A stretch of DNA of 57,794 nucleotides, filler included, from Bipalium vagum (Eukaryota): assembly GCA_037834085.1 (NCBI GenBank). It is 3 parts of 3 records of this genome, joined end to end, with 100 filler letters (N's around TTAATTAATTAA, not from the genome) between each part and the next. Parts side by side here need not be neighbours in the genome. Positions count along the whole stretch, not along the records: positions 39,590 to 57,794 come from JBBMKC010036450.1; 2 more parts are not named here. One strand, 5' to 3'. The position numbers and the translations under genes were made by a program. The notes under the pieces are model-generated. The model was not told the DNA's origin and did not search any database. It was given only the letters and a program-made list of their open reading frames with translations. Within the stretch, counting starts at the first letter, position 1. Every line of letters begins with the position of its first letter. Shown here in pieces: positions 39,590 through 57,794 of the stretch.

Positions 39590-39689
39590 AAATACAAGTG
39601 TTGCTTTACTGATTGTTTTGATTTTGCACCACCTAAGATTTTTGGAGTCAGGTTTAAATTTGATACACTAAATATTGAACATTTCTATA

Positions 39690-39912
39690 ATTAATTTTTA
39701 CTAAAAATAATTTTAAATTCTAAAAGTTTCTAAAAATTACAATTAAAAAATTTTAGATGACACAATACTAGTTAAAAATTAGAAGTTGTTCCTAAAATAA
39801 TATTTTTAATTTAATTTTTAAAATTTATTTAATTAATTTGAATTAATAATTAATAATTAAGAAAATAATTTTAAATTAGCCAGCTTATTATTTAAATGTT
39901 ATTTTGACGCGT
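39690..39912 (-). repeat. Fragment homologous to the 42380-42655 part of the solo LTR
   Basis: Shared TGTTCCTAAA..TAATATTT..AAAATTTATTTAATTA..AATTAATAATTAATAATTAA..ATAATTTTAAATT.GCCAGC.TATTA blocks. Confidence 0.7.
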
Positions 39913-40689
39913 TTTCCTTCGAAGAAATTTGTGGCCATCCAATGCGGATTCCAACTCATTAAATACTATTCTGGTTAGACGACTAATCAGTCGTAGACCA
40001 GCTCGATTAATAGGGAATGTCAATTCCCTTTTTAGATAATAAATTTCTAAGTTGGTTCCTCCTTGCGGACTCTGATCTTAGGAATTTAGGTTCGCCATTG
40101 TCAAAATTAGATCCATTAAAAAAATAAATTGCTCTTTTTTTCTTTTTAATTAACTTCTAATTATTATTTTAATATTATTGTTATTATTACAATTCTGACC
40201 CTTTTGCAGTCTTACTAATTAATTAATTATAATTATAAATAATCTAGACCCATTTTCGATCTTTATCATTTACTTTGTATCAGGGTTAACAGGAATGTGT
40301 CCTTGGCTAACCTAACAAATAATTAAAATTTCTAATATTTATATTAAATACAAAGAACGCTTGAATCTTAAATGTGAGAATAAATACAACTATTGAAATG
40401 ATTTTCCATTTTTTAATGTTTGGTTTTTCTCATCCCAATTCAAGACTGAAGAAGGAATACAAAAACTCAAAATATGAATTTAGGAGGAATAGACATCTGT
40501 GACTCAGAAGAAATATGTTCACAAATTAAGGGTTCAAGATGGAAAGGTCTAATTCTAAGAAAAAAACACAGAAATACTGCCCAGATTCGTCGAAAAAATT
40601 TCCAAAAGAAATAGAAAAAGACTGGAAAAATTTTTTTACGACGTGAAAGATTTGTTGTACAAAATGAGAAGTCAAGATTATTGGTGATA

Positions 40690-40960
40690 ACACTGTCTTT
40701 TCCAAATTTTTATAATAGGTCTTTAACTTTGCTGAAAATATCTGTAGTTACCTATTTCTCAAATCCTGTAAGACATGTTCCATAATCATTGAAAGATAGC
40801 ACTAACCATTAACAGTCTCATGATGGATAAAAAAGGTAATAGTAAAATATTTTGAGACGTGCATTCATACCTTCACTTTCTTTGAATGCAGAAGAATTTC
40901 CTTTTTATCTTTAGCTGTGTATTCTTTAATTTTATCTAGTATCCAACCAAAAATTTCTCC
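40690..40960 (-). mobile_element. DD41D-type transposase fragment
   Basis: LLHSKKVKV*..FFIHHETVNG*CYLSMIMEHVL. Confidence 0.5.
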
Positions 40961-41159
40961 ATCTTTATTTTTATCAATCATTGCAAAATTTGCTATTGAA
41001 TTTGATGAATTCAATAGCTATTGTTTCGACCTCTGATGAACCTAATTTAATGCCACATTAGTAAAAAAATTTTTTAAAACATTGTTTTATAGATTTATAT
41101 TCTCATCTACTTTTGTGTCTTTAATTTATTTTTCAAAAATTATAATTAAGAAAATGCTT

Positions 41160-41575
41160 TAAAATGAGCATTTTACAATTCGAAAACGCTGATTTTTCTG
41201 TTTCTAGGTTCGTGTGGTGCCCATATTCCTGCTCTGTTTGTTTTTCTCATATCAGGTAAATGTCGAAGAATTGTTTCTCTATCATAATTGAGTTAATTAC
41301 ACAAGTCGTCTTTTTTCGAGATGAATTTTCTTCCACAGCAGTCTTAAAGCATACATATCTACAGTTGATTGCCTGCCAGATCTAGAGACATCTCGTAAGT
41401 CAAAATTATTTGAATCGTCTAAACCACCTCTAACATTTCCTCAGATCGAGAATATTTGGATAAATTTTTTTATTGATTTAATTGGTTCTGATGACGTCTC
41501 CCCATGGTTAAATTCATACAGTATACCATTGCTTATATGGTCTCTTGCTATTTTGTCTGTTATTTCCACAAATTA
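41160..41575 (-). mobile_element. Mariner N-terminal half remnant
   Basis: ILYEFNHG..RKC*RWFRRFK..DVSRSGRQ..ETILRHL..GIWAPHE. Confidence 0.85.
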
Positions 41576-41824
41576 AATGTTTGTTATGAAATTTCTATAA
41601 TAAAAAATTATTAATTACGTATATTTCATAAAATCGCCAAATTACAAATGATTTTAAAAAAAAATCTAAATTCAAATTAATATTAACTATAAAAAACTAG
41701 ATTACTTTTGAGAAGACTTAATACAGATGATATCTCTATAAAATCTTGTCTCACATATTTTAAATTTACAATATAATTATTATATATTGGATCAGTTACA
41801 TTTATTATTTTATTTTTATTCATA

Positions 41825-44076
41825 TAGTGGTGGAAAATATTTTTCTGACACTTGTAATTTTTGTGATTAAAGATGAATTAATATATGTTTGACAATCTTT
41901 AATATTTATTGTTTCCGCTTGCTAATTAGAAACTTATTATATATGTTGGCGCAAACCTACCCCTTAGCGTATCTGACCTTAATAAGGTTGCTATGGGCTT
42001 AACTATTGAGCTCGCACCCAAAAACACAAAAATAACTTCTCTTAAAATATATTAATAAAATGAGGTTAAGACCCTTTTAATTACAGCAACAAACTGCAAC
42101 AGGCAGTCACCTCAAACAAACTGCAACAATCGGCAATCAATCAATTTCCAACAAACTGCAAAGCAGTCACTCTTAATTAAAAAGCTGTGCCAGGGAAAAC
42201 CCTGGTCAGCAAGATGAAATCATCATTAAAAACCATACCTGTTTTGTCTGGCAATTTTCTGGGCGAAAAATAATGCATTTTCGCTGGCTTATATACTATT
42301 TTACTGTTCATTTTAGCGTCTCTGATTGACAAGTTAAGCTGTCAATCAAGGCGTATCTTCTATATTTAATTATTACTAAAAATAAAATGAATTTCTAAAA
42401 ATTAAATTTTTATAAATTCATGCTACTGACTAAAAATCAGTAGTTGGTACTATTTAAAATTAATTTTATTAAAAAGTATTATAATTTGATAATTTTTAAG
42501 ATAACGTGCTACTGATTAGAAACCAGTAGCTGTTCCTAAATAATATTTAAAATTTATTTTTCAAAATTTATTTAATTAGTTTTAAATTAATAATTAATAA
42601 TTAAAATGCATAATTTTAAATTGGCCAGCGTATTAATTAAACTTTATTTTTCGCCAAAAGTCTATTTACAGAGATTATAAGATAGGAGTCGAACCTCAAC
42701 ATATATCTAAATTTTGAAGACTTGTTTAAGTAATATATCCAAATTGTAATTTCTTAAATTTTATAAATTATTATTGAAAAAATTTTTTCTGACAGTAAGT
42801 AAATTTTTACTGATTATAGTTTTAAATAAAAAAGTTAGGTATGTATTCAAAGGAATTAAGAAATATTGTAATGTACAAACGTTCATTGGGTGAATCATAC
42901 AGACAAATTTACTTAGATTGGAATATGAAAAATAATGAAATTAAAACTATTATAACATACAAATTAAAGATTCACAAGCACAAGTGAGCACCAAAAATGA
43001 AGATAAAGAAACCTGATGCTCTAAATATCAGAGAAACCATATCAAAGAGGCTGATAATCACCACAAGGTTACATGTGCAGTTAACCAGTTTAGATGTGTC
43101 CAGGAGAACACTAAATAATTGGACGTTGAAGAATAACATGAGATATCGAAAGGTGGCACAGAAAATTATGCTTTCTAATAAACATAAATTGGAAAGAATT
43201 CGTTTGGTTTCACACAGTGGATTGGATAGAATACTGATTGGAATATAGCGATATTTATTTATCAAAAAAGGTTGAGTCTTGACGGTCCTGACAACTTGTA
43301 TTAAATAATTATTGATGTTTTAAAGACGTTTATAATACATAGACTTTCGTGTTTTAAGAGATGGGAAACATCTCCGCGTCAAAAAGGTCAATGTTAAGGT
43401 GAAATGATTATGATGTTGGGTATGACTATGCCAAACGGTCTAATTGGTTTTAAAATATTCGAAAGAAAACAAGACAGTGAAAAATACATTTGCCTTTTCA
43501 AAGACTTTGCTGTGCCCATTATCAATCTCAATTATCATGAAGGCTATTATGTGATTCAGGATAATTGTCCAATCCATGTTTCAAAAAATTTAAATTATAT
43601 TTGGAAACAATCTTTTCAAGTCCTGAATTGACCAGCAAGATCCCCAGATTTGAATATTATGGAAAATGTTTTCAGATATTGTGTATGATGAATACCAGCC
43701 TAAAGTTAGGCATGAATTGGTCAACAGAGTAAATAATGCTGTTGAGGAGATAAATACCACAAAGAAATAATTGTTATTGATTTATTAAGAAATTTTAGGT
43801 ACAGACTACCTAAAGTGCTAATATGTAAAGGAAATGTTATTAATTAATATTTATGTTATGATATAAATTTGTTTCAGTTAGTGTCAGAAAAAATTTTTCC
43901 ATTTAAAAATCAGTAAATTTAAAGATTTTATTTAAAGAAATCTCCGAAATCTAAATATTTATTAAGTATATTATTAGCATGCAAAAATTATAAATATCAA
44001 CAACTTTCAAAAATATATAATATTTTATCTTTTATCAAAAAAATTTCAAGTGTCAGAAAAATATTTTCCACCACTA
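41825..44076 (+). mobile_element. Tc1-family IR/DR-type transposon carrying a nested solo LTR; transposase disrupted (about 42841-43847)
   Basis: Perfect 30-bp outer TIR TAGTGGTGGAAAATATTTTTCTGACACTTG with TA TSD; inner repeats at about 42775 and 43878; SLDGPDN and IQDNCPIH...PARSPDLNIMEN. Confidence 0.93.
41944..42701 (-). mobile_element. Solo LTR (758 bp)
   Basis: TGTTG...CAACA inverted termini; 4-bp TSD TATA (41940-43 and 42702-05); TATATAA on the minus strand at 42289-95; non-coding; related copies at 26.6 and 39.7 kb. Confidence 0.8.
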
Positions 44077-44289
44077 TATTTATATTTCATTTCATTGAAT
44101 CAATAGTAATATTTAAAATTTTATTTTCTAATTGATTTTTAATTAAAGTAATTCCTTTATTAATAAATTACTTTATTACTTTTATTTTTATAATCATCAT
44201 AAAAATATGAAGAGTTGTTATATAAGTAAAGTTATTATTCATTTTGTAATTTTAACTATTCAAAAATAATATATTTTATCTCTTTTAAA

Positions 44290-45800
44290 ATATTTTGAAA
44301 TGCCTGCATATTGGGAAAACGAAGCTTGGTTTGCTCATCTGAGAAACCTTATTATTTTCCATTAAAAATTTAGCATAAAACAAACATGGTTAATTTTCAA
44401 CAATAAACTAAATCTGTTTCACTTTGAATATCAAATTTGTTATACTTTTTCATATGTTCTTTTAATATCAAGTTGAGGTAAGCAATAAGAAACAAAATAA
44501 CAGTTTTTAAAATATTCAACCCAATGAACTCCTTTTTAGATTTGTATCGTGAAAATTATTAATTAAAGGATATTCAGATTTTACTCTTTTTTCAGTAATC
44601 CAAACTCGCAGTAAGTCTTTTAAAGACATTTCTATCTATTAAATCAAAATTTTAAATTGCATTAATTTACATTTGTGTAAAAATTCTAAAAGTGAACTTG
44701 ATTTTATAATTTTGAATCGAGACTATTTATTTTTAATTTCATAATTATTTTCTCATAAAGATAAATGTATAGCCAACTTTCTTGTTTTACGATTTTAATA
44801 TTATCCTTAGAATTTTTTAATAATTCCTTTAGTTCTGTTCTATCTAATTTATCTATTTTTTATGTTTTAAACTATTTATAATGGTATTTCTTAATCATTT
44901 CCCAAAATACCGGTAAAAATATAATTCACCTTCTTCAAAGTATAAACCTGACACAGTTGCTACTTCTTTTGGTTTTAGTTTTTCAATTTCAATTTCTAAC
45001 TTCCTTTTTTCCACATCTATTTTTCGTGCTTCTTTTGATTTTTGTACAGCTGTAGCAATTCTACCATATGCTTCACTAACCGCATCTATGAAACAAATAT
45101 TGGTTCCAGAATGTAATAAAGGTAGAACTCATCCTTTTTAGTCTTCTGCTCCTTATTTTTCCTGTTTTATTTCATTAATTAATTTTTGAATTATAATGTT
45201 GCTTATCATTAAAAGTAATATATTTCGATTTTCCTATATCAATAATATTTTTAGAATTTTTCTTAAGTTATTTCAGTCATTTTTGTAGAAAATAATTTTT
45301 TATAATAAACTAAAAATTTTTTTTTGAACTTTATTGGTTGAATTAAAAAAATCTATTTTTCCAAAGAAAATGGAACATCTTTCATTCGAAAGAGCACTAG
45401 TAAGTTTCTATATTAAAGTCTACAGATTTTTCACATCTACCTTCGTTTTCGAGATTTTAAGGCTTGAATATTTAGAAACTTGCATAAGTAAAACACCAAT
45501 TATTTGTATCTTTTTTGAATCGAATATGATTTTTCAGTTAGATCTTTGTATGTGGTTTAATATTTCTTCAATACAATTTTAATAAGTATTTTATTCTTTC
45601 TAATTAAGCTATATGAAAACAAATTCGAAAATCAGTTATATATTTGTAGGTAAAACATTTATGAAATTTATTTTACTTCCAAAAGTTAGAGCATCTTAAA
45701 CCAATACATTTTCAACTCAATAGATTTTATAGGAAAAGAGTTATTAAAGTTAAAATATACCTTTTAAAGTCAAAATTCCGAAATAATGAATCTAGTTAGA
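44290..45800 (-). mobile_element. Decayed Polinton/Maverick-like segment with adenain-type cysteine protease pseudogene (about 44370-44630)
   Basis: Across frameshifts: LINNFHDT..KGVHWVEYFKNCYFVSYCLPQ..KYNKFDIQSETDLVYC*, fitting the adenain H..D..Q..C order (HWV, YFDSYG, IQ, CG). Upstream small ORF with VSGLYF..GILG; possible minor-capsid debris at 45330-45800. Confidence 0.6.
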
Positions 45801-46823
45801 CATTTTGGCTGAATAATTAAAAACTTCTGGATTCTCCATTAATTAATGGAAATATAAATATTCTTTTGGCAATGAAGAGACTCTGACTCCTATATAATGG
45901 AGTATCAGAATTTCTATATGAACACAAGAGAGTTAGTTAAAGTTAGTTAATGAATCGATCAAAAGGGACAAAAGAATTGGTCGGATGAAAAGTGGTTGAG
46001 CCCTGAGTGATTATTTGTTACGTTCATATTTCCTTTAGTAGTTAACAAATAAAATAAGTGTGAAGTTTATTATTTTTATTTCTGATCACATCGCAAAGTG
46101 ACCAAAATACAAACAGTGGAATCAGAGAGAGATAAATCAGGATAAAATTAAAATTTTTTTTAATATTCCTTTGAATATTAACAGAATTATTTGTCCTTCT
46201 GGATCAAGAAAACAAATTTAGGACAATGTTTTTTTACCCATTGCAATATTGTAGGTCAAATTAAAGACATTGGGTCATAAGCAGATCATTTTTCACACAT
46301 AGCATAAATTAAACTTATATTTAGATTATTTTATACAACAATTATCGTACTGAATTTTGTAAAAATATATTTTGATAAAATTCTATCTTATTAGGTGATC
46401 CAAAACAAATATTTCAGAAAACATGTTAAAATGTTTTCAATTTCTGGCAATATTTAATTGAAACTTAATAAAATAGTGAAAATTAGTTTTTTAAAAATAT
46501 TTTATTCAAATTTAAAATACAAACTGTTTTCAAATTTGAGTAAAAATTTTTATTACTCTCAAATTTATAAATTTAAAAAATTATTTTCATTAAATTCTTG
46601 AAGTCACTATTTCAAATCCTTTTAAGGCCTGAATTCCTATTTGCTCTTAAAAATGTTAATTTAATTTAAAATTATTTTTAAATTAATAAAAAATTATTAT
46701 TTAGGAAATGTTGATGAGAAATAACATTAAATTTAAGTCGAAATTCAAAAAACTGTTGTTTAAATTACCAATTTAATAAAAATTAATTTAAGTTCGCTTA
46801 TTATTAAAACAAACCAAATCAAT

Positions 46824-47231
46824 ATGAGCCCAATATCGTCTAAAAATGAGTTATCAATATCTGTCTTCATCGAAAAATTAAACAAAATAAAAGATAGAAG
46901 AGAGAGAAGAAAATTCGTCAAGAAATACCATAAGATCTACTATGTATATGTGCAAATGGTAACGAAGAAGGACTTTAGCTACCTAAAAGGATTTGAAGAT
47001 ATTTCGAAATATTTTCCTGGCGTCTTAATAAGAAAGAATGAGGAAACCCAAAATAAAATGGACATTGGAAAGCAGATATATGAGAATGGACATTTGATGA
47101 ATACTCCGATTTCTAATGATAAACATGAATTTGAAATGAATGAGGAAATGAGAATAACTCCACACAAGAACCATTGTGAAGTTTCAAGTGTTGATAGTGA
47201 AAAGATAACCTCTGGTTTCAAGAGCCCATAG
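46824..47231 (+). CDS. Orphan 135-aa ORF, unknown function
   Basis: True ATG, protein-like composition, distinct from very AT-rich flanks, AATAAA near 47303; no family recognised. Confidence 0.5.
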   Translation: MSPISSKNELSISVFIEKLNKIKDRRERRKFVKKYHKIYYVYVQMVTKKDFSYLKGFEDISKYFPGVLIRKNEETQNKMDIGKQIYENGHLMNTPISNDKHEFEMNEEMRITPHKNHCEVSSVDSEKITSGFKSP

Positions 47232-49514
47232 CGACGAGAAATCCAAAGAAATGCTTCGATAGCTTATCCGAATACTTTATAAAATTTCAATTTTTTAGAA
47301 TAATAAAATCTTTTTGTCTTTCTTTGGTGAATAATTTATATTTTGAAATAATTTAATAATAATAATAATAATAATATATTCATTACAATTGTCATTATCA
47401 GTGTTTATTCTAAAATATAAGACTAAGAAAATATGTTTTTGGATACATTTGATGGGTTCAAAACAAATTAGGAAAACAATCTAAATGGAACGATCTAAAA
47501 ATTTTTATGCAATGTTTCTTTCTGATATATACTTATATTATTTATTTATTTGAGAAGTAACAAAAATATGAAAAAGATATAAATAAAATTTTGCGAATAT
47601 AAGGTGAAAATTTTTGGAATTGTTTTTCTAATTCTATCTTTTCTTTTTATACATTACTTTTTAGGCTCTTACTTTTTTGCACAGTTGTATATATACTTAA
47701 CTGTGAAAAGGTTTTTAAAGGTTCTTATTAAACTAAAATGTAATTATCAATTTTTGATTATGAACACATTTGTTACAGATCAATTTTGTTTTTACTTTGA
47801 ATTTTTATTGAAGTTTATTTGTTCTGAAATACACACTATAAATTCTTCTGGTTTGCAATTATTTTGTTAAGTTGCCTACAGATCAAAATTCGATATTTTT
47901 AACTCCATAAAATCATTGCATTTTAGTAGAAACTTAAAAATTAATTTAAGCTCATATTTAAATAAATATTAAAGCAATATATTAAAATATTATGCTAAAA
48001 AGATGTTTTTGTAGTTCTAAAATTTCACTTCAAAGCTTCTTCGCTGCAATTTTATCTTTATCTGTTCTACTTCCATATCTATAATGCCATAAAAATTGGA
48101 TTTGTATTATAAATTTTATTAATAATAATACTTTCTTCTGTCGATTTTATTGATTTTAATTTAATTTAATTTTTATATTTAAAATTTCGAATTTTATCAC
48201 CGTCACGGAATTTTGAATTTATCTTTCAGCTTATATTTGAAATATTTTCAAGTTTATTTACTTTAACTTTTCGGGATTGGCTAAAGGCCTTGACTGCTTT
48301 GCTGAAGATCAAATAATATAAGAGATTAAATAGCCTAAACAAATTATTTTTAACATAACATAAAATCATGTTCAACATCCGTTGACAGCTTAAGGTTAAG
48401 AAATCCCCACTATTTATTTAGGGTAAATTAAAAGAAGGTTCAAATCCTCTCGTACGATCCTCATATTAGTGTCAAACAATGCAAATAATCAGATATTGTT
48501 AATAAGGTTAATTTTCAAAACGGGGAGGTTTTTTAACATTTTTATTACCGTAATGCATCTTTCATTTAGTTGGTTTCTTATACTATTTTTTTAAAAAATT
48601 GAGCAGAATTCATCCCTAACCTTAAAATCCATCTGTAAAACTCGTTAACTAGCAAGATAAAAATTGGCCAGAGTTCCGCAATTTTTCTTATTTTTTTATC
48701 GCTTTATTTTAAAAAGTTTGGCAGGTTCATTTGCAAACATCAATTTTCAAACACAACAATAAACAATTCATATCACAAAGGTATCATTTTTGTTTGGTTT
48801 AAATATTTTAATTTAAATGTAATTTAATGTTTTTAATGTAATTTTAAATATTTTCCATTCTCTGTGATTTTCATTATTTTTCTGAACTTTTCACTTTTGT
48901 TAATAAAATAACTTTATAAAAACTGATTTCATTTTAAATTATAATTAAATATCCAGTAATTAATTAATTTTTTGGCTAGTAACCACAAGAGTTTAAAAAA
49001 TTGTACCAGGTCAAAAATGTTGTTTGCATCATTCTTAAAATCTGAATTTTGTTTCAGCAAAAACGCTACTTTTAACTTAATTAAATATTCAAGCAAACAT
49101 TTATAAGGAATTTTTTTAATTAAAAAAATATTATAGCTTTATTTTTTTTATTTATTTTGAAAATATTATATAATGAAAAATTTATTAGTGAAATGAAGCA
49201 TTTATTTTATTTATAATTTAATATATTTTATTTTAATTAATAAAATATCTTGGTTGAGTTATTTTTTATATTTTCAGATAATTTTACTGAAAAAGAAAAA
49301 AATTAATTTAAAAAGTTAATTTTCAATAAGGAAAAAATGTTATTATCTGCAGCTGAAAAATGGTTGTTAATTAATTAGCTTTATCTAATTATATTTATTG
49401 AACTTTACAATATATATATGGTATATATTTAAATATTGTATAATGGTTTGATACGGACTTCCTTACATATGTATGTCTTCATATTATTAATACTTTAATT
49501 ATTTTAAAGTGTTT

Positions 49515-51311
49515 TTATCCTTTAGACTTTGGAGACTTTTTTGGTGATTCGCTTTTTGCAGTTGGACTTTTATTTGCCGTTTCAGTTGGGGGAGTATCTA
49601 ATTTTTTGCAAAAGATGTGTGGTTGTGACTTCGTTGTGTGGACTGCATCACATTTTACAGGCAAATGATTCCAGGTTGGACAAGTGGACCATTTATTGAT
49701 ATATCTGGTCTCTCTGGTCAGAATGAAGGGTACCCTCACAGCCGGATGTCCACTTTCCTTATCTGTCGGTGTTTGTAAATTCATTCGAACGACAATATCA
49801 TAACTGATATAAACAGTGTGGCACAGATCACGGTTAGTTAAAATTCGTTTCGTTTGGATTTTTGCTGGTGCTCCATCACTGGGAGCCTTTTCTTGAGTCG
49901 ATTCGGCTTTTGGTGGTGATTTCTTGTTTTTCGGTGATTCCTTTTTCGATTCTCTTTTCGATTTTTCCGGCGAACCTTTTGCTTTTGGAGATTTTTCATT
50001 GGTACCTTCAGCAGCAGCGATTTCTTCCGGTGTCAATGGAACGTCTTTCATGATTATTGTACTTGAAGCGAGGAAAATTTTTTCGTCACGCTCCATTTTA
50101 CCGTCGCAAGCTAAATTGTATTTGGACCAATCGTACATGGGTGTAATTTGAACGGTTTTCGTCCAACTTTTGCTTTTGGGATTTATTGGCAAACCATTTT
50201 CTCCGGGTTTCAACCAAACTTCATTGAGTGGAATGCTACTGTCGTGGGGTATTTCGTTAAAAAATCTATAATTTTGCTCAAAGAAAACTGTTATACTGTT
50301 GATTACATGTCTCTGGGAATTATTTTCAACATTAATTGTAACTATTATCTCTTCGCCGTGATAATAAAGGTCTCTATTTAAAGATGCCGACAAAATTAGG
50401 TCGCCTATATCGTCAAGGGTTTGATACCGAATATAATTACATGGCGAACTTTTTCGTAAGGTAAAGGTTAACAACGATGGAGCTATTGTATATTTCCAAA
50501 AATTAAGCCGCACTTCTTTATCTGACGTTGGTTTTATATATTCGTATTTAGCGATAAAAGTTCTCAATACCCAAAACAAACCGTCTACAGGATATTGGTG
50601 ATTATATGGTCTATTAAAAGTTACTGAATTTGGTGCTCCAGAAAGATCAAAAAGGAATGGATAACCTTCCCATTCACTACCGTATTCAGTACGTATTTTT
50701 CTAATCAACGTTTGATTATATGGTGTCGGTAATACTTTTCTCTCAAAATTTGATGGCTGAATATAATAATAATCTCTGTAACATTGATGTTGAGCCCGAA
50801 TTTGTGGCGGGAATGGAGTGATGGGTGAAGATTCTGAGTATTTCCATGTTGCAGTAACCTCAACAAATAGTTTTTCATCATTACCTAGAAAAAGATGTCT
50901 TCGCATTGCTACTACACCTTCAATTATGGGTTTCTCATAAATTGGGGGCAATGGTTCATTTTCGTCCGCCGGCTTTTTACCTTTAGGAGATCCTTTTTCA
51001 TTTGGTGATCCTTTACCTTTGCCTCCTTTATTTGAATTGCATAATTGTTGAACTTCTGGAGCCTCATTGAATACTTCAAAAATATGTACCCGTCTAACTA
51101 TTAATGCCATATGATGTGTGACACGCTTGTAAGATGGATCCATAGGGGTTTCATATCTGCGACGTGCAAATGTCTCATTGTCAGCTTTAAGACATTCTTC
51201 AGCTGACCATTTTGGTAAAACCCTCTTTTCTGGACTCTTCTTATTTTTTCCTGCATCGCTTTTCGAACCTTTGCGATTGGGTGATTCCTTTTTAGGACTT
51301 CCTTTAGCCAT
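49515..51311 (-). CDS. Divergent beta/visual-type arrestin, intronless, with Lys-rich SP-repeat insertions (598 aa)
   Basis: IEGVV, YPFLFDL..PNSVT, VRL..WKY..AP, LSASLNRDLYYHGEEI.V...NNS, LACDGK..LASST and ISYDIVV..VPFIL match beta-arrestin motifs in order. Confidence 0.92.
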   Translation of the reverse strand: MAKGSPKKESPNRKGSKSDAGKNKKSPEKRVLPKWSAEECLKADNETFARRRYETPMDPSYKRVTHHMALIVRRVHIFEVFNEAPEVQQLCNSNKGGKGKGSPNEKGSPKGKKPADENEPLPPIYEKPIIEGVVAMRRHLFLGNDEKLFVEVTATWKYSESSPITPFPPQIRAQHQCYRDYYYIQPSNFERKVLPTPYNQTLIRKIRTEYGSEWEGYPFLFDLSGAPNSVTFNRPYNHQYPVDGLFWVLRTFIAKYEYIKPTSDKEVRLNFWKYTIAPSLLTFTLRKSSPCNYIRYQTLDDIGDLILSASLNRDLYYHGEEIIVTINVENNSQRHVINSITVFFEQNYRFFNEIPHDSSIPLNEVWLKPGENGLPINPKSKSWTKTVQITPMYDWSKYNLACDGKMERDEKIFLASSTIIMKDVPLTPEEIAAAEGTNEKSPKAKGSPEKSKRESKKESPKNKKSPPKAESTQEKAPSDGAPAKIQTKRILTNRDLCHTVYISYDIVVRMNLQTPTDKESGHPAVRVPFILTRETRYINKWSTCPTWNHLPVKCDAVHTTKSQPHIFCKKLDTPPTETANKSPTAKSESPKKSPKSKG

Positions 51312-51944
51312 AAAACGTTTTGAGAGATTTTTAATTGATTTATTGAACTGGATTTAAATAAACATTGATTATTACTATGAACGTAATTAAAGAGGTAAAT
51401 AATAAATTTTTCTTTTATCTTTTTCTGTTAAATTCTTAAATATCAAAACTTAAATTTTCAAAGTACCAATTTTATTTATTTTAAAAATTTTAAAAATATA
51501 ATAAATTTTTTTTATTAAATATGATAAATAAACATAAATAAAATATTTCCCGAAGAATTGTGTGGACTTTGTAAGTCTTACATGGGCTGTACAATGATTT
51601 TTTGAAGCAATTTTTAAAAACTTTGATTAATTAACTATGGTAATATAATTAAGTTGTAAGATTTATAACAATATTAAAATTATTATTAAACTTCGTTTTG
51701 GACCATTTCACTTTAACGCCTGTTAAAATATAAAATACAATATAATGTAAAACCCCTTTATAGTTACTATCAAATATTTTAATAAGTAATTAAAATATAA
51801 TTAAAATTAATTAAATTAAATTAATTACCTTTAACATTTAAATTCAATGAAGAAGAAAAAATTAATAATATTTTTAAGCTAAGGTATGGAAATCAAGTTT
51901 GACGGGTTTAAAAGATCTCAGAACCATGATATGATTATAATTTT

Positions 51945-52550
51945 AATAAGAATGCTGCTGCATTTCAATACCTTACCATAAATTTTCCAGAAATTAGTGA
52001 ATTAAAGGAAGGAATATTCATTGATCCTCAAATTCGACAACTGATTAAAGACAAAGAATTTCCTTCAAAAATGACACCAGTAGAATTTAATGCTTGGAAA
52101 TCATTCGTTGCAGTTATGCATAATTTCCTTGGAAACTACAAATCCGACGATTTTGAAAAGCTAATAAAGAAAATCAAAAGCTTTCAAGTGCTAGGTTGCC
52201 GAATGAGATTAAAACATCATTTTTTAGACTCATCTGAATAATTTTCCAGCAAATCTTAGAGACTAACGTTAGTAACTGAGCTACAGATTCCACCAGGACA
52301 TTGCCAATGTGGAGAACAGATATCAGGACAACTACAGTGTCAGCATGATGGCAGGTCACTGTCGTGACACTGCAACGTAACATCATCTTAGGAAGTCTAT
52401 GAGCAAAAAATTGATTTGTAAATAAAATAATTTTTTTGTTTTAATTAATTGTTTTGATTCTTTTTCTTTAAATCTGGACTACTAAGGAAAAACGGTTTAC
52501 TGATTCGTGATCAACGATCAAAATCCATATAATCTCACCTCCAATCTCTA
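51945..52550 (+). mobile_element. Chapaev3-type (CMC) transposase 3' remnant
   Basis: FQYL..FP.ISELKEGIF..PQIRQL..AWKSF..V..NFLGN..LGCRMRLKHHFLDS and RFHQDI..ENRYQ..MMA; subterminal GATTCGTGATCAAC. Family name from my recollection of this motif set. Confidence 0.7.
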
Positions 52551-52817
52551 AGACATTTAACGTATATTGCCCATGTATTACATAGAGTTTGTGAGGGCAT
52601 TAAGAATGAGTATTCATATAAAAATGAATTTATTTCTTGTAATAAGAAAATTCCGAAGAAGGCTCCTAATTGAAATTACAAGTATTTCTCTTTTACTTTC
52701 TCCCATTCTGACTAGACAGAATACATGGCAAAATCCTATAATTTTCATTTGTGAACATATTTCAATGATATGTAAATTTTTTGATTCTTTACCAAATGAT
52801 TCTTAAGCAGTTAACAT

Positions 52818-54009
52818 ATCTGAATCGTTCAAAAAGTTTCTGGACAAGCCTACTAAGCGTGTTAATTTTTAAAAGATTTGTATATCATTTAAAACTACCA
52901 ATGTGTGGTATTTACTATGCAGAAATTCATTCGTGTGTGTTTATCTTATTTACGTCAGCATTTAAACATGTCTTTGTCTGTCGAGAACTTTTCAAAACTA
53001 TAATATCGAACGCTATTAGATTTTGACTTCTGTTAGACCAATCCAACCAGAAGATTCCTTCCAATCTTGAAACAGCTTATAAGGATAAGTGCCCCTCAAA
53101 ATCTGTGCAGGATGAAAAAAGAGATGGTCTTCCATCAACATAAGATAATGAGAAAAATAAAAAACAACTTGAGAAATTGATTCAGGATAATCGGTGAAAT
53201 ACGATTACAGGCTTCGCTGATAATCTAAAGATATTAAGAGAATCTGTGGCAAGCATGTTGGAAAAAATGAATTATAGAAAGGTCCTGTCTCTATGTATTT
53301 CTCGCTTTCTCACACCAGAAATGCTTAAAGTTACGCTGGCATCGAGCCACGAGATTCTGAGAATTCACAACATTATAACCACTAATGAAACTCCACTTAC
53401 GTGAGTCAAGAGAATGATGTACGCCTGAAGAAGTGAAGAAATGAGTGAATCAAAGTGAGAAAGCCAACGGCAGAGAAATCATGTCCACTTTGTTACGGAA
53501 AAATGGAGGAAATATTAAATTGAATTTTTTGGAAAAAAATTAGACAATTACAGGTCAGTACTATGCTGGTCTCATCTCCAAGTTTTTTGACCTCAATTGG
53601 AAACCGAGAGGACTGTCTCACTAGCTACAAATAGAAAATGCTCCAGTTCACACAAGATGTATCTCTCAAGAATCAATCGACAAGGAAGAATTCAAACTCT
53701 GAATTCACCTTTCGTACAGTCCTGATTTGGCTTCTTCCGGTTATTGTCTTTTTGGAAAATTAAAAAATAAAGTGAAATGATGTTTGAGTCCTCAGATGAC
53801 TCAGAAGAGACTGTTCGCTCTTTCTTGATGAGCTTCCTAAGGATATTTATCATGATGCGTTTAGTGACCTCCCTGTGTACCGGACAAAATGTATTGATGT
53901 ATCACTTCTATATTACTATAGCAACTGCTAGAGAATATATTAATATATTTAATATTTACTATGTAATCTTTTAAATATGCAAGTCCGAATGCATTTTGAA
54001 GGAACCATG
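52818..54009 (+). mobile_element. Degenerate near-full-length mariner (irritans-like)
   Basis: YRKVLSLCISRFLT, ITTNETPL, ENAPVHT and HLSYSPDLASSGYCLFGKLK; weakly matching ends (TC.TTCAAAA.G..T..GGAC). Confidence 0.8.
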
Positions 54010-57000
54010 TACGTAAATTTTTAGCAAGTAAACAAGAATTGAGAGACGAGCGTATTAAAGCCCTTGGTTACTTTTCCTCACAAATGCTATTGCAATATTG
54101 GAACAACAATTTTCTCAGAATGATTTGCGGTGGACTATTCTCTTGAATGTGAAGAAGGCATTTAATTTTTTTTGCAAAACGAAAATTAGATAAGAGCAAA
54201 ATCAAAAACTCTGAAATTAAATGTGACGTCAAACAAAGATCTAAATTATAAACTGCTAACAAAGTATACTCCACCACTGTCTACTGGTATTGAATGATAA
54301 TTTTCGATATATAAGTATTTAAATACGAATCGAAGGTGCAGGCTCCGAAAAAATATTGAAATATGGAACCTTGAGAACATTTTTAGTCGATTCAATTTAA
54401 ATAAATTGGGTATCAAAACTAATTTTGAAATTACTTTAGTTTTAAATTTTAAAATGTATGTATATTTTCGTATTTTTCGATTTAAAAGTATACACATTTT
54501 GGCAAATCTTTTGCGCCTTTTTGGAAACATTTTTGCACCTAGAATCTTTACTATAGTGATAACACATCATCAATACCATACCGTAACTGTCATTTTTTTC
54601 AAACACGATTTATATTTTTAAAGAAAATAATTTTTAAAATTTAAGTGTTATTGTTTAACGGAAAACGTTTTCTATTTCCTTTCTAAAACTAAAGTGCCAA
54701 TTGATAATCTCAAAAATTTTGAGGATTGATTATTAATTGAAATTTTAATATTTTTATTAATCAAGACCTAACTCCAATATCTATGATATTGCAGGTCTAA
54801 AATTTTTATTAATCGTTTCACAAAGGATTCATCTAATATCACTATTTATTTCTTATTACAGGGAAATTATTCATCTATGGTTTTTTTTTATGAAAACCAG
54901 CTCATTAACGGTTACCGCTATCCCGCCACAAAGCAGTATTGCCTGATTATCTAATGCAACTAGGTTCTTACACTATTTGAGTTGAGGGACATACATACAT
55001 AGGTAATAAAAAAAAATTCTAATGAAGAATATAATTAATTTCATTCTATTGGTTCTGCGCAAAGATCCTCATAATGAAATTATAACTCATTATTTTTTAA
55101 TTTTTTATAATAACTATGCAAAGGTTTTATGGGTCACATATTTATGAAATTTAAAATAATATTATAGCTTATAAGCTTTGTTTGAAAATATATTTGTTAA
55201 AATCATTATTGATTATGTTGATATATGCATGACCTCAATTTATTTAAATTAGCTGACTTATTTCAAGAAATAATTATGGAAGTTGGTAAAATGTATTTTA
55301 TCCGTTGGATGTCGTTGATAGATTGGCTAAAATTCCTCTAAATTTGTTTAATTGAAACCAATTTTGAGATTACAATATACTTAATATGAAGCTATCATGG
55401 ATAACTGATGCTTTTCAGTTCCTTTTTTGAAGAATTTCAAAATAAAATATATAATAAACTCTTTATTATAAGGGGATGTTTTGCAACCATAAAGAATATT
55501 AAGAAGGAAAAGAGCTTTCAGATCCACTAAACTTTTGATTTCCATGTTTTATAGTTAAGATTTTTTGCGTTCAACACAAGCATGAATTGACTTTCATATT
55601 AATAGGTTGTTTAAAAAACCGGTATGGAATTTTTTAAAGTATTATCCCTTAAAATTTTTAAATAGCAGTTTTTCTAAAGGTGTTCGTTTTATGGAAGAAA
55701 ATTTGACAAACTGCTCGAGAATCTAATTTCTATATGTTGTTCATTTTCTATTTCAATAAATAAGATAATCTGATACTGCTTACATTCATAGGTTAGGTAC
55801 TTATAGAACAAACCAAGACCTCTTATTCTTACTATGAAGATATCCTATAGCCAATTTTTCATCTTGATGATTTGAGCATAAATAAAAAAATATTTGTGTA
55901 AAAATAAAACATTTACAATGATTATAAATGAAATTTTTACCCTTTGTGAAAATTAAATGAAAGAACTTACATTTTCGACCGACGATGTCTTGGAGTTCCG
56001 AAAATTTTAAGATGAATTAAGAATTAAGAATAAATAAAAAACTCGTCAAAAATCAACTTTTTTTAAAAAAAAATGTTCAAAATTATTTTTTACATCCACA
56101 AGTTTTTGGTAACGTACAGTAAATTTTTCAGAATTTATTAAATAAATTTTTAATGAATCTTTAATTCTAAACTTCTTATTTAAAACATTATGCAAATTTA
56201 CCCAAATTTTTCCCTGACAGTTTTTCAATCAAATTATGCTTTGAATAATAATTACTTTATAATGTTCACTGGAAAGGACATATAATTTCCCTACGCCCTA
56301 TACCAAGAAGACAATATTCTCATAAATTATAGCCCCTGAGATACATTTGATATTATTATTGTTGCATTCAGCTGATAATGTGAATTTTTTCTTCAAATTT
56401 TCCGTTATTTTTTTATTTTCTATATATATTCATTTGATTAAAAAAAATGTAATGTTAGCACAAAAATATCTGTATTTCGTGCTAAATAGATAAACACGGA
56501 AAAGATATAATTAAAACAAGGAAAAATATCAAGTATCTCGATCATTTAAACAAATTTTCGTTAGGGTTTCAAAAAATATTGATAATATCTATTTATTTGG
56601 AATAATCAATAATTAAAGAATAATTTCTTGAAAATTATATTTAAATAAATATTTTCTGTCTATCAAAATTTATTATGAGAATTTAATTAAAAATATTCGA
56701 ATAGAAAATTTTATTTAAAATTTCATTATTATTAAAAGATTTAATTTTTCATTGAAAAATTTCGCATAATTTTTATAATCAATAATTATATATTTTATTT
56801 TCTGTTACATTTCAAATTACAAAAAAATTAACAATTAAAATTAATGAGTTATTAGTTGAAGATGATAAAGCTTGATCATTAGAATAGAACCAAAAATATT
56901 AAGAATAAGATAAATAAATAAATCATGTGTCAGTGTTATATTTTTACTTTAGTGTCCTTTCATTTACATTTCTTCAGTAAATTTATTCTTAATTAACACC

Positions 57001-57214
57001 TTATAAATAAAATGGGACTTTTTTGAAACTTAAATAACTTAATGTGATCTACAAATTGTTTAAATTATCTATTTTATCTTACTAAGCAAATCAAAATCTT
57101 TAAAATGATATATCGAAGTAAGATAAACACATCGTGTTTTAAATCTCGAAAAATGTGGTTTTGCATTATCATAAAGCAAAATAGGTCATTTTTTATTAAA
57201 AAATGATTTTCAAA

Positions 57215-57720
57215 TAACTTCTGGTGTCTTATTTCAATTTTGTTGAAGCTTACCTGACCTGTGATAGATTTACCAGGCTTTATAAGTTATAATGAGTTAA
57301 TCCATCTATAGATCATCAAACAGTGATCATAATCTTCTTTGGGTGAAGACTTTGCTTAGGCATATTTTTCGATTTTCATTACACGCCCAACCATCGTGCT
57401 GATCTTTGCGATTAGTGACTTCTTCAGTTTCTTCTGATAATTAACTTATTAAAGTTTCTTTCAAAATCGTTTTAATTGATCAGTGATTTTTATTGATCTT
57501 TGATAATTCAATTATTTTGCTGTTCCAAAATTCGAGTATTTTATTTGGAAAATTTGATTATTTCATTGGTTTTTGGAGCAAGATTACAGTGACAATTCGA
57601 ACTGGGTATCAAATGTTTAAGTTGATCATCGTGTGATCTTTAGCAGGAATATCGTAAGATTATATTGACCAAATAAAATTTTGTGTGATTATTTTGATTC
57701 ATTTTTGTAGGAGCACTTTG
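57215..57720 (-). mobile_element. Mariner remnant
   Basis: MPKQSLHPKKIMITV**SIDGLTHY..KPGKSITG. Confidence 0.75.
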
Positions 57721-57794
57721 ATTACAATAATTTAAAGGGTCAACAATTTTTGAGTTAAGAATGCATATACGTATATAAACGTAACAATATAATA

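Follow-up and report, generated by a model that had tools for sequence, protein, structure and literature searches.

A tail-less, intronless type of beta-arrestin with basic Ser-Pro modules, matched only in flukes and tapeworms

The locus and its open reading frame

The window studied here, that is, the whole stretch of 57,794 nucleotides of Bipalium vagum DNA that was analysed (assembly GCA_037834085.1; three parts of three records joined with filler letters), carries on the minus strand of its last part (JBBMKC010036450.1, positions 39,590 to 57,794) a gene for an arrestin of 598 residues, which is the subject of this report. The open reading frame (ORF) starts with ATG and runs without interruption across 598 codons, and the guanine-cytosine (GC) content within it is 36-38%, compared with 21-25% in the flanking DNA. 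The features of the gene are listed in Table 1. What is new, and what the sequence comparisons firmly indicate, is a tail-less and intronless type of beta-arrestin that has matches in parasitic flatworms only and that carries three conserved polybasic modules predicted to be disordered.

Table 1. Features of the arrestin gene, with positions counted along the whole window
Feature	Residues	Position in window	Strand	Basis
Complete single-exon coding sequence, with stop codon at 49515-49517	598 and stop	49515..51311	-	ORF reading
Module 1: N-terminal basic segment, 3 Ser-Pro, net charge +8, predicted disordered	1-33	51213..51311	-	motif scan, model
N-terminal extension: predicted amphipathic helix (37-48) and F48-A-R-R-R-Y-E	34-56	51144..51212	-	alignment, model
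Arrestin strands I-III, Y61-K62-R63 aligned to canonical F-K-K	57-82	51066..51143	-	alignment, model
Module 2: strand III-IV loop insertion, 2 Ser-Pro, Gly/Lys-rich, predicted disordered	83-127	50931..51065	-	motif scan, model
Arrestin core: strands IV-X, finger loop, helix I, C-domain, gate loop	128-421	50049..50930	-	phmmer, model, alignment
Module 3: back-loop insertion, LASST linker to strand XVIII, 4 Ser-Pro, net charge +6, predicted largely disordered	422-486	49854..50048	-	alignment, model
Last C-domain strands, including strand XVIII	487-538	49698..49853	-	model, alignment
Module 4: C-terminal tail with a Ser-Pro-rich basic end, 3 Ser-Pro	539-598	49518..49697	-	alignment, model

Prediction of the arrestin fold

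The original prediction, made from this DNA alone, held that an intact arrestin core lies between the modules, and Pfam (through Arrestin_C), phmmer, AlphaFold2, Foldseek and VIA-align agree on this point. It had also proposed to check the fold by a Pfam search for both arrestin domains and by structure prediction, and here the outcome was divided: Arrestin_C (PF02752) was detected above threshold at residues 303-387 (30.7 bits against a cut-off of 27.7) and was the only Pfam domain found in the 598-residue protein, Arrestin_N (PF00339) gave no match at E values up to 1, and the predicted structure has two lobes. The N-domain is recognised by structure and by phmmer matches to PDB chains, not by Pfam. 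In the phmmer search against PDB sequences, residues 130-479 align with beta-arrestin-2 and beta-arrestin-1 at an E value of 8e-13; identity to canonical arrestins is only 17-25%.

The AlphaFold2 model was computed from an alignment of 76 sequences (A3) and reached a predicted local distance difference test score (pLDDT) of 74.8 and a predicted template modelling score of 0.71, superseding a run with a 6-sequence alignment that gave a pLDDT of 49.8. Most of the core exceeds 90, and values below 50 are found at residues 1-32, 91-115, 445-474 and 538-598. Foldseek matched the model to beta- and visual arrestins with an E value of 1e-26 and target-normalised TM-scores of 0.75-0.83, while VIA-align superposed residues 57..538 of the model on residues 4..357 of the matched chain with a Z-score of 33.1 and a root-mean-square deviation (rmsd) of 2.4-2.9 Å over 335-346 residues, the value for beta-arrestin-1 being about 2.5 Å. 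A complete two-lobed arrestin fold is therefore shown, as a predicted structure, for residues 57-538. The rmsd was lower against receptor- or phosphopeptide-bound arrestins (2.4-2.9 Å) than against basal-state crystals (3.2-4.3 Å), with the Z-scores of the two groups tied within about 1, and this closer fit of the model to active-state arrestins agrees weakly with a tail-less open conformation.

Composition of the four basic modules

Twelve Ser-Pro motifs confined to four Lys-rich modules had been described in the original prediction, and all 12 were located, each of them in a disordered basic segment (residues 5, 10 and 26 in the first module, 102 and 108 in the second, 441, 447, 459 and 465 in the third, and 582, 589 and 593 in the fourth); two extra Ser-Pro pairs lie within the fold, at residues 162 and 289. 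Shuffling the protein 2000 times gave 4.5 ± 1.9 such pairs and never more than 12, against 14 in the actual sequence, and the excess is also present inside each module, where a fraction of only 0.002-0.04 of the within-module shuffles reaches the observed count. The strict [ST]P[KR][KR] unit occurs twice in the 598 residues (5-8 and 589-592), and the protein has six S-P-x-K/R sites of the cyclin-dependent kinase (CDK) type, which may be phosphorylated.

The absence of such modules from canonical beta-arrestins, also noted at the outset, was borne out by 66 canonical sequences, in which the strand III-IV loop has a median length of 14 residues and the loop after L-A-S-S-T one of 10, against 48-101 and 79-129 residues, respectively, in the subfamily to which the 598-residue protein belongs. 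The N-terminal extension ahead of strand I spans 37-59 residues in the subfamily and 9 in canonical arrestins, and the tail past the last strand measures 66 residues in the 598-residue protein and 23-24 in its orthologues, the canonical median being 56. All of the modules have a net charge of +2 to +15 and contain 17-33% Lys and Arg.

Distribution and phylogeny of the subfamily

A word search returned only five close relatives, at 34-43% identity, from Calicophoron (two paralogues), Clonorchis, Echinostoma and Spirometra. Because the lineage restriction rests on an absence of relatives, an exhaustive profile search was made over 1.84 billion representative proteins. Ten subfamily proteins scored at least 106 bits and were separated by a gap from the ordinary arrestins, which scored at most 97 bits, and nothing comparable, in particular no vertebrate counterpart, stood above the ordinary-arrestin level among these representatives. 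The members added come from Mesocestoides, Fasciola gigantica, Trichobilharzia, Heterobilharzia, Paragonimus, Opisthorchis and Dibothriocephalus, and every named subfamily match belongs to a trematode or a cestode. These searches point to a small and apparently undescribed subfamily with matches found only in flukes and tapeworms.

Word searches with the alignment or with the Trichobilharzia core region yielded no further members. The word search gave no Schistosoma orthologue, but low-complexity words probably swamp the candidates, so that this result is uninformative about Schistosoma. A beta-arrestin that marks photoreceptors in the miracidium atlas of S. mansoni, Smp_152280, could not be linked to the subfamily.

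In a maximum-likelihood tree, the 598-residue protein branches as the sister of the digenean sequences as a whole (support 89/88), the cestodes fall outside this grouping, and the digeneans divide into two paralogue groups. The subfamily forms a strongly supported group, outside the seven other canonical arrestins sampled, together with P0015, a 481-residue arrestin read from a Logan contig of run SRR33002330 (L004, ORF 281-1726), which joins on a long branch. P0015 has several motifs in common with the subfamily and a back loop of 49 residues, but is devoid of basic Ser-Pro modules; it could mark the state that preceded the origin of the modules.

Three deposited gene models were corrected in the course of this analysis. 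The Clonorchis sinensis model annotated as 'beta-arrestin' (P0002, 519 residues, DF143043.1) is truncated at its 5' end and appears to lack the N-terminal module because its deposited start is an internal Met; the in-frame sequence upstream (L001:5863-6000) begins Met-Pro-Ser-Pro-Lys and supplies both the N-terminal module and the motif FARKRYD, giving a protein of 565 residues. The Opisthorchis viverrini model of 225 residues (P0012, KV906412.1) is mis-spliced, and the ORF at L006:3737-5575 gives a full-length protein of 575 residues. The Fasciola gigantica protein (TPP66942.1, P0008) is family-like to about residue 365 and wholly divergent beyond it (alignment A2), its corrupt 3' end being probably a frameshift or an error of modelling.

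Conservation of the modules

Basic Ser-rich segments occupy the same three sites in every full-length member (alignments A1 and A2), namely the N-terminus, the strand III-IV loop and the loop after L-A-S-S-T-I-I-M. The expectation that modules would persist at the same loops in orthologues was therefore borne out for these three sites and failed for the C-terminus; by this comparison the fourth, C-terminal module is private to the 598-residue protein, since in the orthologues only 23-24 residues follow the last strand. The motif itself drifts, from S-P-K in the flukes and in the 598-residue protein to a mixture of SP with SK/GS in Spirometra and to 11-13 SK/GS per module, with only 2-3 SP, in Mesocestoides. 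Strict [ST]P[KR][KR] units number 0-3 per module in the orthologues, with none in the two tapeworm orthologues. Because strict SPKK is rare and is absent from the tapeworms, which have SK/GS repeats instead, the alignments indicate that what is conserved is a positive net charge, an abundance of Ser and disorder, and that the SPKK motif itself is not.

This pattern bears directly on the function first proposed for the modules, namely SPKK-type binding to the minor groove of DNA or chromatin, switched by CDK and possibly at work in the germ line. Two strict SPKK units and six S-P-x-K/R sites in a basic context, together with conserved module positions, agree with that proposal, and the polybasic stretches could double as nuclear import signals. 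The likeness to the SPKK repeats of sea-urchin sperm H1/H2B, and to the KSP repeats of neurofilament H/M and of microtubule-associated proteins (MAPs), consists of Ser-Pro followed by Lys, Lys-rich disorder and the minimal consensus of proline-directed kinases; it is compositional, with no homology. The motifs here are few, do not form the tandem arrays that sperm histones typically have, are not conserved in the tapeworm orthologues, and lie in loops of a folded adaptor, not in a histone tail or a filament side-arm; the adaptor is an otherwise complete phosphoprotein-reading arrestin without a DNA-binding domain. We consequently regard DNA binding as quite improbable. Of the earlier interpretation, the arrestin with four basic Ser-Pro modules stands, and the extension to DNA, chromatin, axoneme or germ line is left unsupported, SPKK being rare and missing from the tapeworms.

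Selection on the modules was estimated from the Clonorchis and Opisthorchis orthologues, which are 95.4% identical and differ by indels of only one SPKK unit, in the N-terminal module, and one AKSPPK unit, in the back-loop module. The ratio of nonsynonymous to synonymous substitution rates (dN/dS, Nei-Gojobori) was 0.09 for the core (bootstrap 0.04-0.15) and 0.26 for the modules (0.10-0.63). The modules are under purifying selection in the liver flukes, more loosely than the fold, and are not neutral filler. That they might be an artefact of AT-rich composition was rejected in view of this selection in the liver-fluke pair and of their presence in other fluke and tapeworm genomes.

The modules could nevertheless be non-binding, as low-complexity expansions that are tolerated or that act as entropic spacers, with all activity residing in the core. 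Such a role would suit the wide range of lengths (48-101 residues in the strand III-IV loop, 79-129 in the back loop), indels that amount to gains and losses of repeat units, the drift from SP to SK/GS in tapeworms, and a fourth module restricted to this species. It accords poorly with the same net-positive, Ser-rich make-up at the same three sites across the fluke-tapeworm split, with the non-random order of SP within the modules, and with a dN/dS of 0.26 whose upper bootstrap bound of 0.63 lies below neutrality. Because position and composition are conserved and dN/dS is below 1, a purely passive role is disfavoured, and we judge it unlikely.

Canonical arrestin features kept, changed and lost

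Kept and lost residues were determined from column counts on the 76-sequence alignment. K62 and R63 of strand I correspond to the phosphate-sensing K10/K11, K205 of helix I corresponds to K107, and R250 to the polar-core R169, the column holding Arg in 6 of 9 subfamily sequences. The gate-loop signature is present on canonical columns (L400-A-C-D403-G-K405 ... L414-A-S-S-T418), with D403 matching the polar-core D290 and K405 matching the phosphate-reading K294; the counterpart of D297 is ambiguous, owing to a one-residue insertion, and D409 is invariant across the subfamily. The two-lobed fold, the D-G-K ... L-A-S-S-T gate loop, the basic pair of strand I, the Lys of helix I and the equivalent of R169 are accordingly shared with the visual and beta-arrestins.

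The finger loop (residues 159-171) has 13 residues, three more than the 10 of canonical arrestins, and the canonical G-R-E-D-x-D-V-x-G-L is replaced by a subfamily-conserved sequence of the S-K-V-P-P-F-P type. The basic patch of the C-domain for phosphoinositide and inositol hexakisphosphate (strands XIV-XV and XVIII) is lost, its canonical Lys/Arg columns being occupied by N338, S339, T341, E345, S359, D505 and V507; E345 is invariant in the subfamily, D505 and V507 stand at the canonical Lys columns of strand XVIII, and R509 is the sole basic column kept. The C-tail, with strand XX and its polar-core Arg, is absent from the orthologues, which stop 23-24 residues past the last strand, and the 66-residue tail of the 598-residue protein contains no strand XX and no F-A-R polar-core motif. 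A regular-expression scan for the clathrin box L-phi-x-phi-[DE] and the AP2 motif [DE]xxFxx[FL]xxxR found neither in the 598-residue protein and no clathrin or AP2 tail motif in any orthologue, and the identical scan found both in three canonical controls. The subfamily differs further in being intronless and in having an N-terminal extension and two polybasic insertions.

The largest of the inserts lies in the back loop, as placed by a phmmer alignment in which residue 422 corresponds to residue 309 of beta-arrestin-2. The back loop is located at the central crest, adjoins strand XVIII, which binds phosphatidylinositol 4,5-bisphosphate (PIP2), and links to the gate loop (PMC11467438).

The closest parallels to the tail-less state are truncated or pre-activated arrestins, namely the p44 splice variant of arrestin-1 (4j2q) and arrestin-1 residues 3-367 (9c6e), which likewise have no autoinhibitory C-tail; the predicted model superposes on p44 with an rmsd of 2.8 Å over 335 residues. 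Those proteins keep normal loops and the lipid patch, whereas here the tail-less state is fixed in the gene lineage and is accompanied by basic modules.

The alpha-arrestins (ARRDC proteins) also have an arrestin fold without the beta-arrestin C-tail. Membership in that group was rejected, the best sequence and structure matches being all visual or beta arrestins and the tree placing the 598-residue protein with the visual/beta clade. A second likeness to the alpha-arrestins is a PY-type motif: one PPxY, PPIY, occurs at residues 122-125 (nucleotides 50937-50948), at the end of the strand III-IV insert, and four digenean orthologues have LPxY (LPSY, LPPY, LPIY and LPHY) at the start of that insert. 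In alpha-arrestins, however, the PPxY motifs are in the C-terminal tail, and a motif scan of the tapeworm orthologues found neither PPxY nor LPxY. Since each protein that has one has only one, at differing positions, and the tapeworms have none, we do not consider these motifs a family feature; they may be ligands of WW domains, or may be due to chance.

Proposed mechanism

Arrestins are regulated by their C-terminal tail, their polar core and their phosphoinositide patch. We propose that the 598-residue protein represents a beta-arrestin-derived, ancestrally intronless and tail-less arrestin that reads phosphoproteins and is tethered electrostatically through phospho-switchable polybasic loops, a reading that we favour tentatively and to which we give a little less than an even chance. 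With the C-tail lost, the arrestin would be constitutively open. Since the phosphate sensors of the N-domain survive, the protein probably still reads phosphorylated partners, which would dock in the N-domain groove. The polybasic loops would hold the protein electrostatically to an acidic surface, the likeliest target being acidic lipids of the inner leaflet beside a membrane partner; membrane lipids are favoured because the largest insert, in the back loop, is directly upstream of a strand that normally binds PIP2, and because the structured patch is lost. Proline-directed kinases, by phosphorylating the Ser-Pro sites, would lower the charge of the loops and release the tether.

Several observations weigh against this proposal. 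At the column of the polar-core D26 in strand III, where strands II-III align ambiguously, there is no clear acidic residue. In view of the remodelled finger loop and the absence of endocytic motifs, the protein may have given up acting on receptors altogether. Polybasic disorder can bind several acidic surfaces, of which a membrane is just one. The search for sequencing runs matching the gene returned one DNA run and no RNA run, and literature searches found no description of the subfamily.

Among the other acidic surfaces, the tails of tubulin deserve attention. The modules might bind them on cortical, tegumental or axonemal microtubules and be released by proline-directed phosphorylation. 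Arrestins have a measurable affinity for microtubules, and KSP repeats are regulated by kinases in neurofilaments and MAPs; the modules are rich in Lys, Ser, Pro and Gly with interspersed Glu, contain S-P-x-K/R sites, are disordered, and have a charge that is conserved in the orthologues. They show no homology to any MAP repeat, Pfam detecting Arrestin_C alone, and their composition is equally compatible with membranes or nucleic acids, so we give this cytoskeletal role little credence. The targets would then rank with membrane lipids first, microtubule tails next and DNA last, the latter because the SPKK unit is neither abundant nor conserved, and roles in chromatin, the axoneme or the germ line are not favoured over a phospho-switchable tether.

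A lineage that has kept the phosphate sensors of arrestins but neither their tail, nor their endocytic motifs, nor their lipid patch constitutes a natural experiment on the arrestin core, in which conserved basic disordered loops were gained at what the alignment places as the receptor-facing crest. The subfamily is found in liver flukes, rumen flukes, schistosomatids and tapeworms, and would, if functionally important, be a parasite-restricted signalling component.

A motif in the N-terminal extension

Ten residues ahead of strand I, and following a conserved helix predicted to be amphipathic, the N-terminal extension has a subfamily-conserved motif, [FY]-F-[AGS]-R-x-R-Y-[DE], that resembles the D-F-A-R-x-R-L of the canonical C-tail, the bearer of the polar-core Arg. 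It is conceivable that the autoinhibitory element has moved from the C- to the N-terminus and that the phosphoinositide patch has been replaced by phospho-switchable polybasic loops, those of the back loop and of strands III-IV, although we look on this double change as something of a long shot. When the profile of the extension was compared with the canonical profile by hhalign, one match was obtained, to the FARxR of the C-tail, with a P value of 0.034 and a probability of 1.5%, which is too weak for homology. A split-chain complex prediction of residues 25-57 against the core (58-545) scored 0.00 and, its controls not having been run, counts neither way. If the idea is correct, this would be a parasite-specific arrestin whose activation and anchoring are both under proline-directed kinases, instead of depending on displacement of the C-tail by a receptor tail.

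Origin of the gene and genomic setting

In Clonorchis, Mesocestoides, Trichobilharzia and Calicophoron, the called gene measures exactly three times the length of the protein plus a stop codon, and in Opisthorchis one continuous ORF (L006:3737-5575) covers the whole orthologue, so that all five orthologue loci read have a single exon. Because every orthologue locus examined is single-exon as well, the intronless state is ancestral for the subfamily. Metazoan arrestin genes are normally multi-exon, and an origin of the subfamily by retroposition of an arrestin mRNA would fit this difference.

The same features raise the question of whether the ORF is a dead retrocopy, being intronless, set in AT-rich surroundings next to transposon debris and matched by no RNA run. 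An open frame of 598 codons amid flanks of 21-25% GC would be unexpected without selection, about 90 alignment columns are invariant between the 598-residue protein and five orthologues, and the orthologues are themselves intronless. On these grounds a pseudogene or retrocopy was rejected, and we consider it extremely unlikely.

The neighbours of the orthologues are a DUF2452 gene in Calicophoron (L005:9787-10394) and spondin-like and CRAL_TRIO genes in Mesocestoides (L002:10650-11198). No conserved synteny is evident. A Pfam scan of ten ORFs from the piece around the gene found none of these domains, and scans of that piece for tRNAs, Rfam families and tandem repeats gave nothing. On the plus strand, a 56-residue ORF at 52071-52241 has the pattern F-L-G-N ... 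L-G-C ... L-K-x-H-F-L and no Pfam match; it may resemble the C-terminal region of a protein that derives from a transposase and is widespread among invertebrate genomes. A second plus-strand ORF, of 83 residues at 42997-43248, matches the helix-turn-helix domain of Tc3-type transposases (PF01498) below threshold (17.8 bits against a cut-off of 31.5). It lies where the GC skew is raised and probably represents the decayed remains of a Tc1/mariner element.

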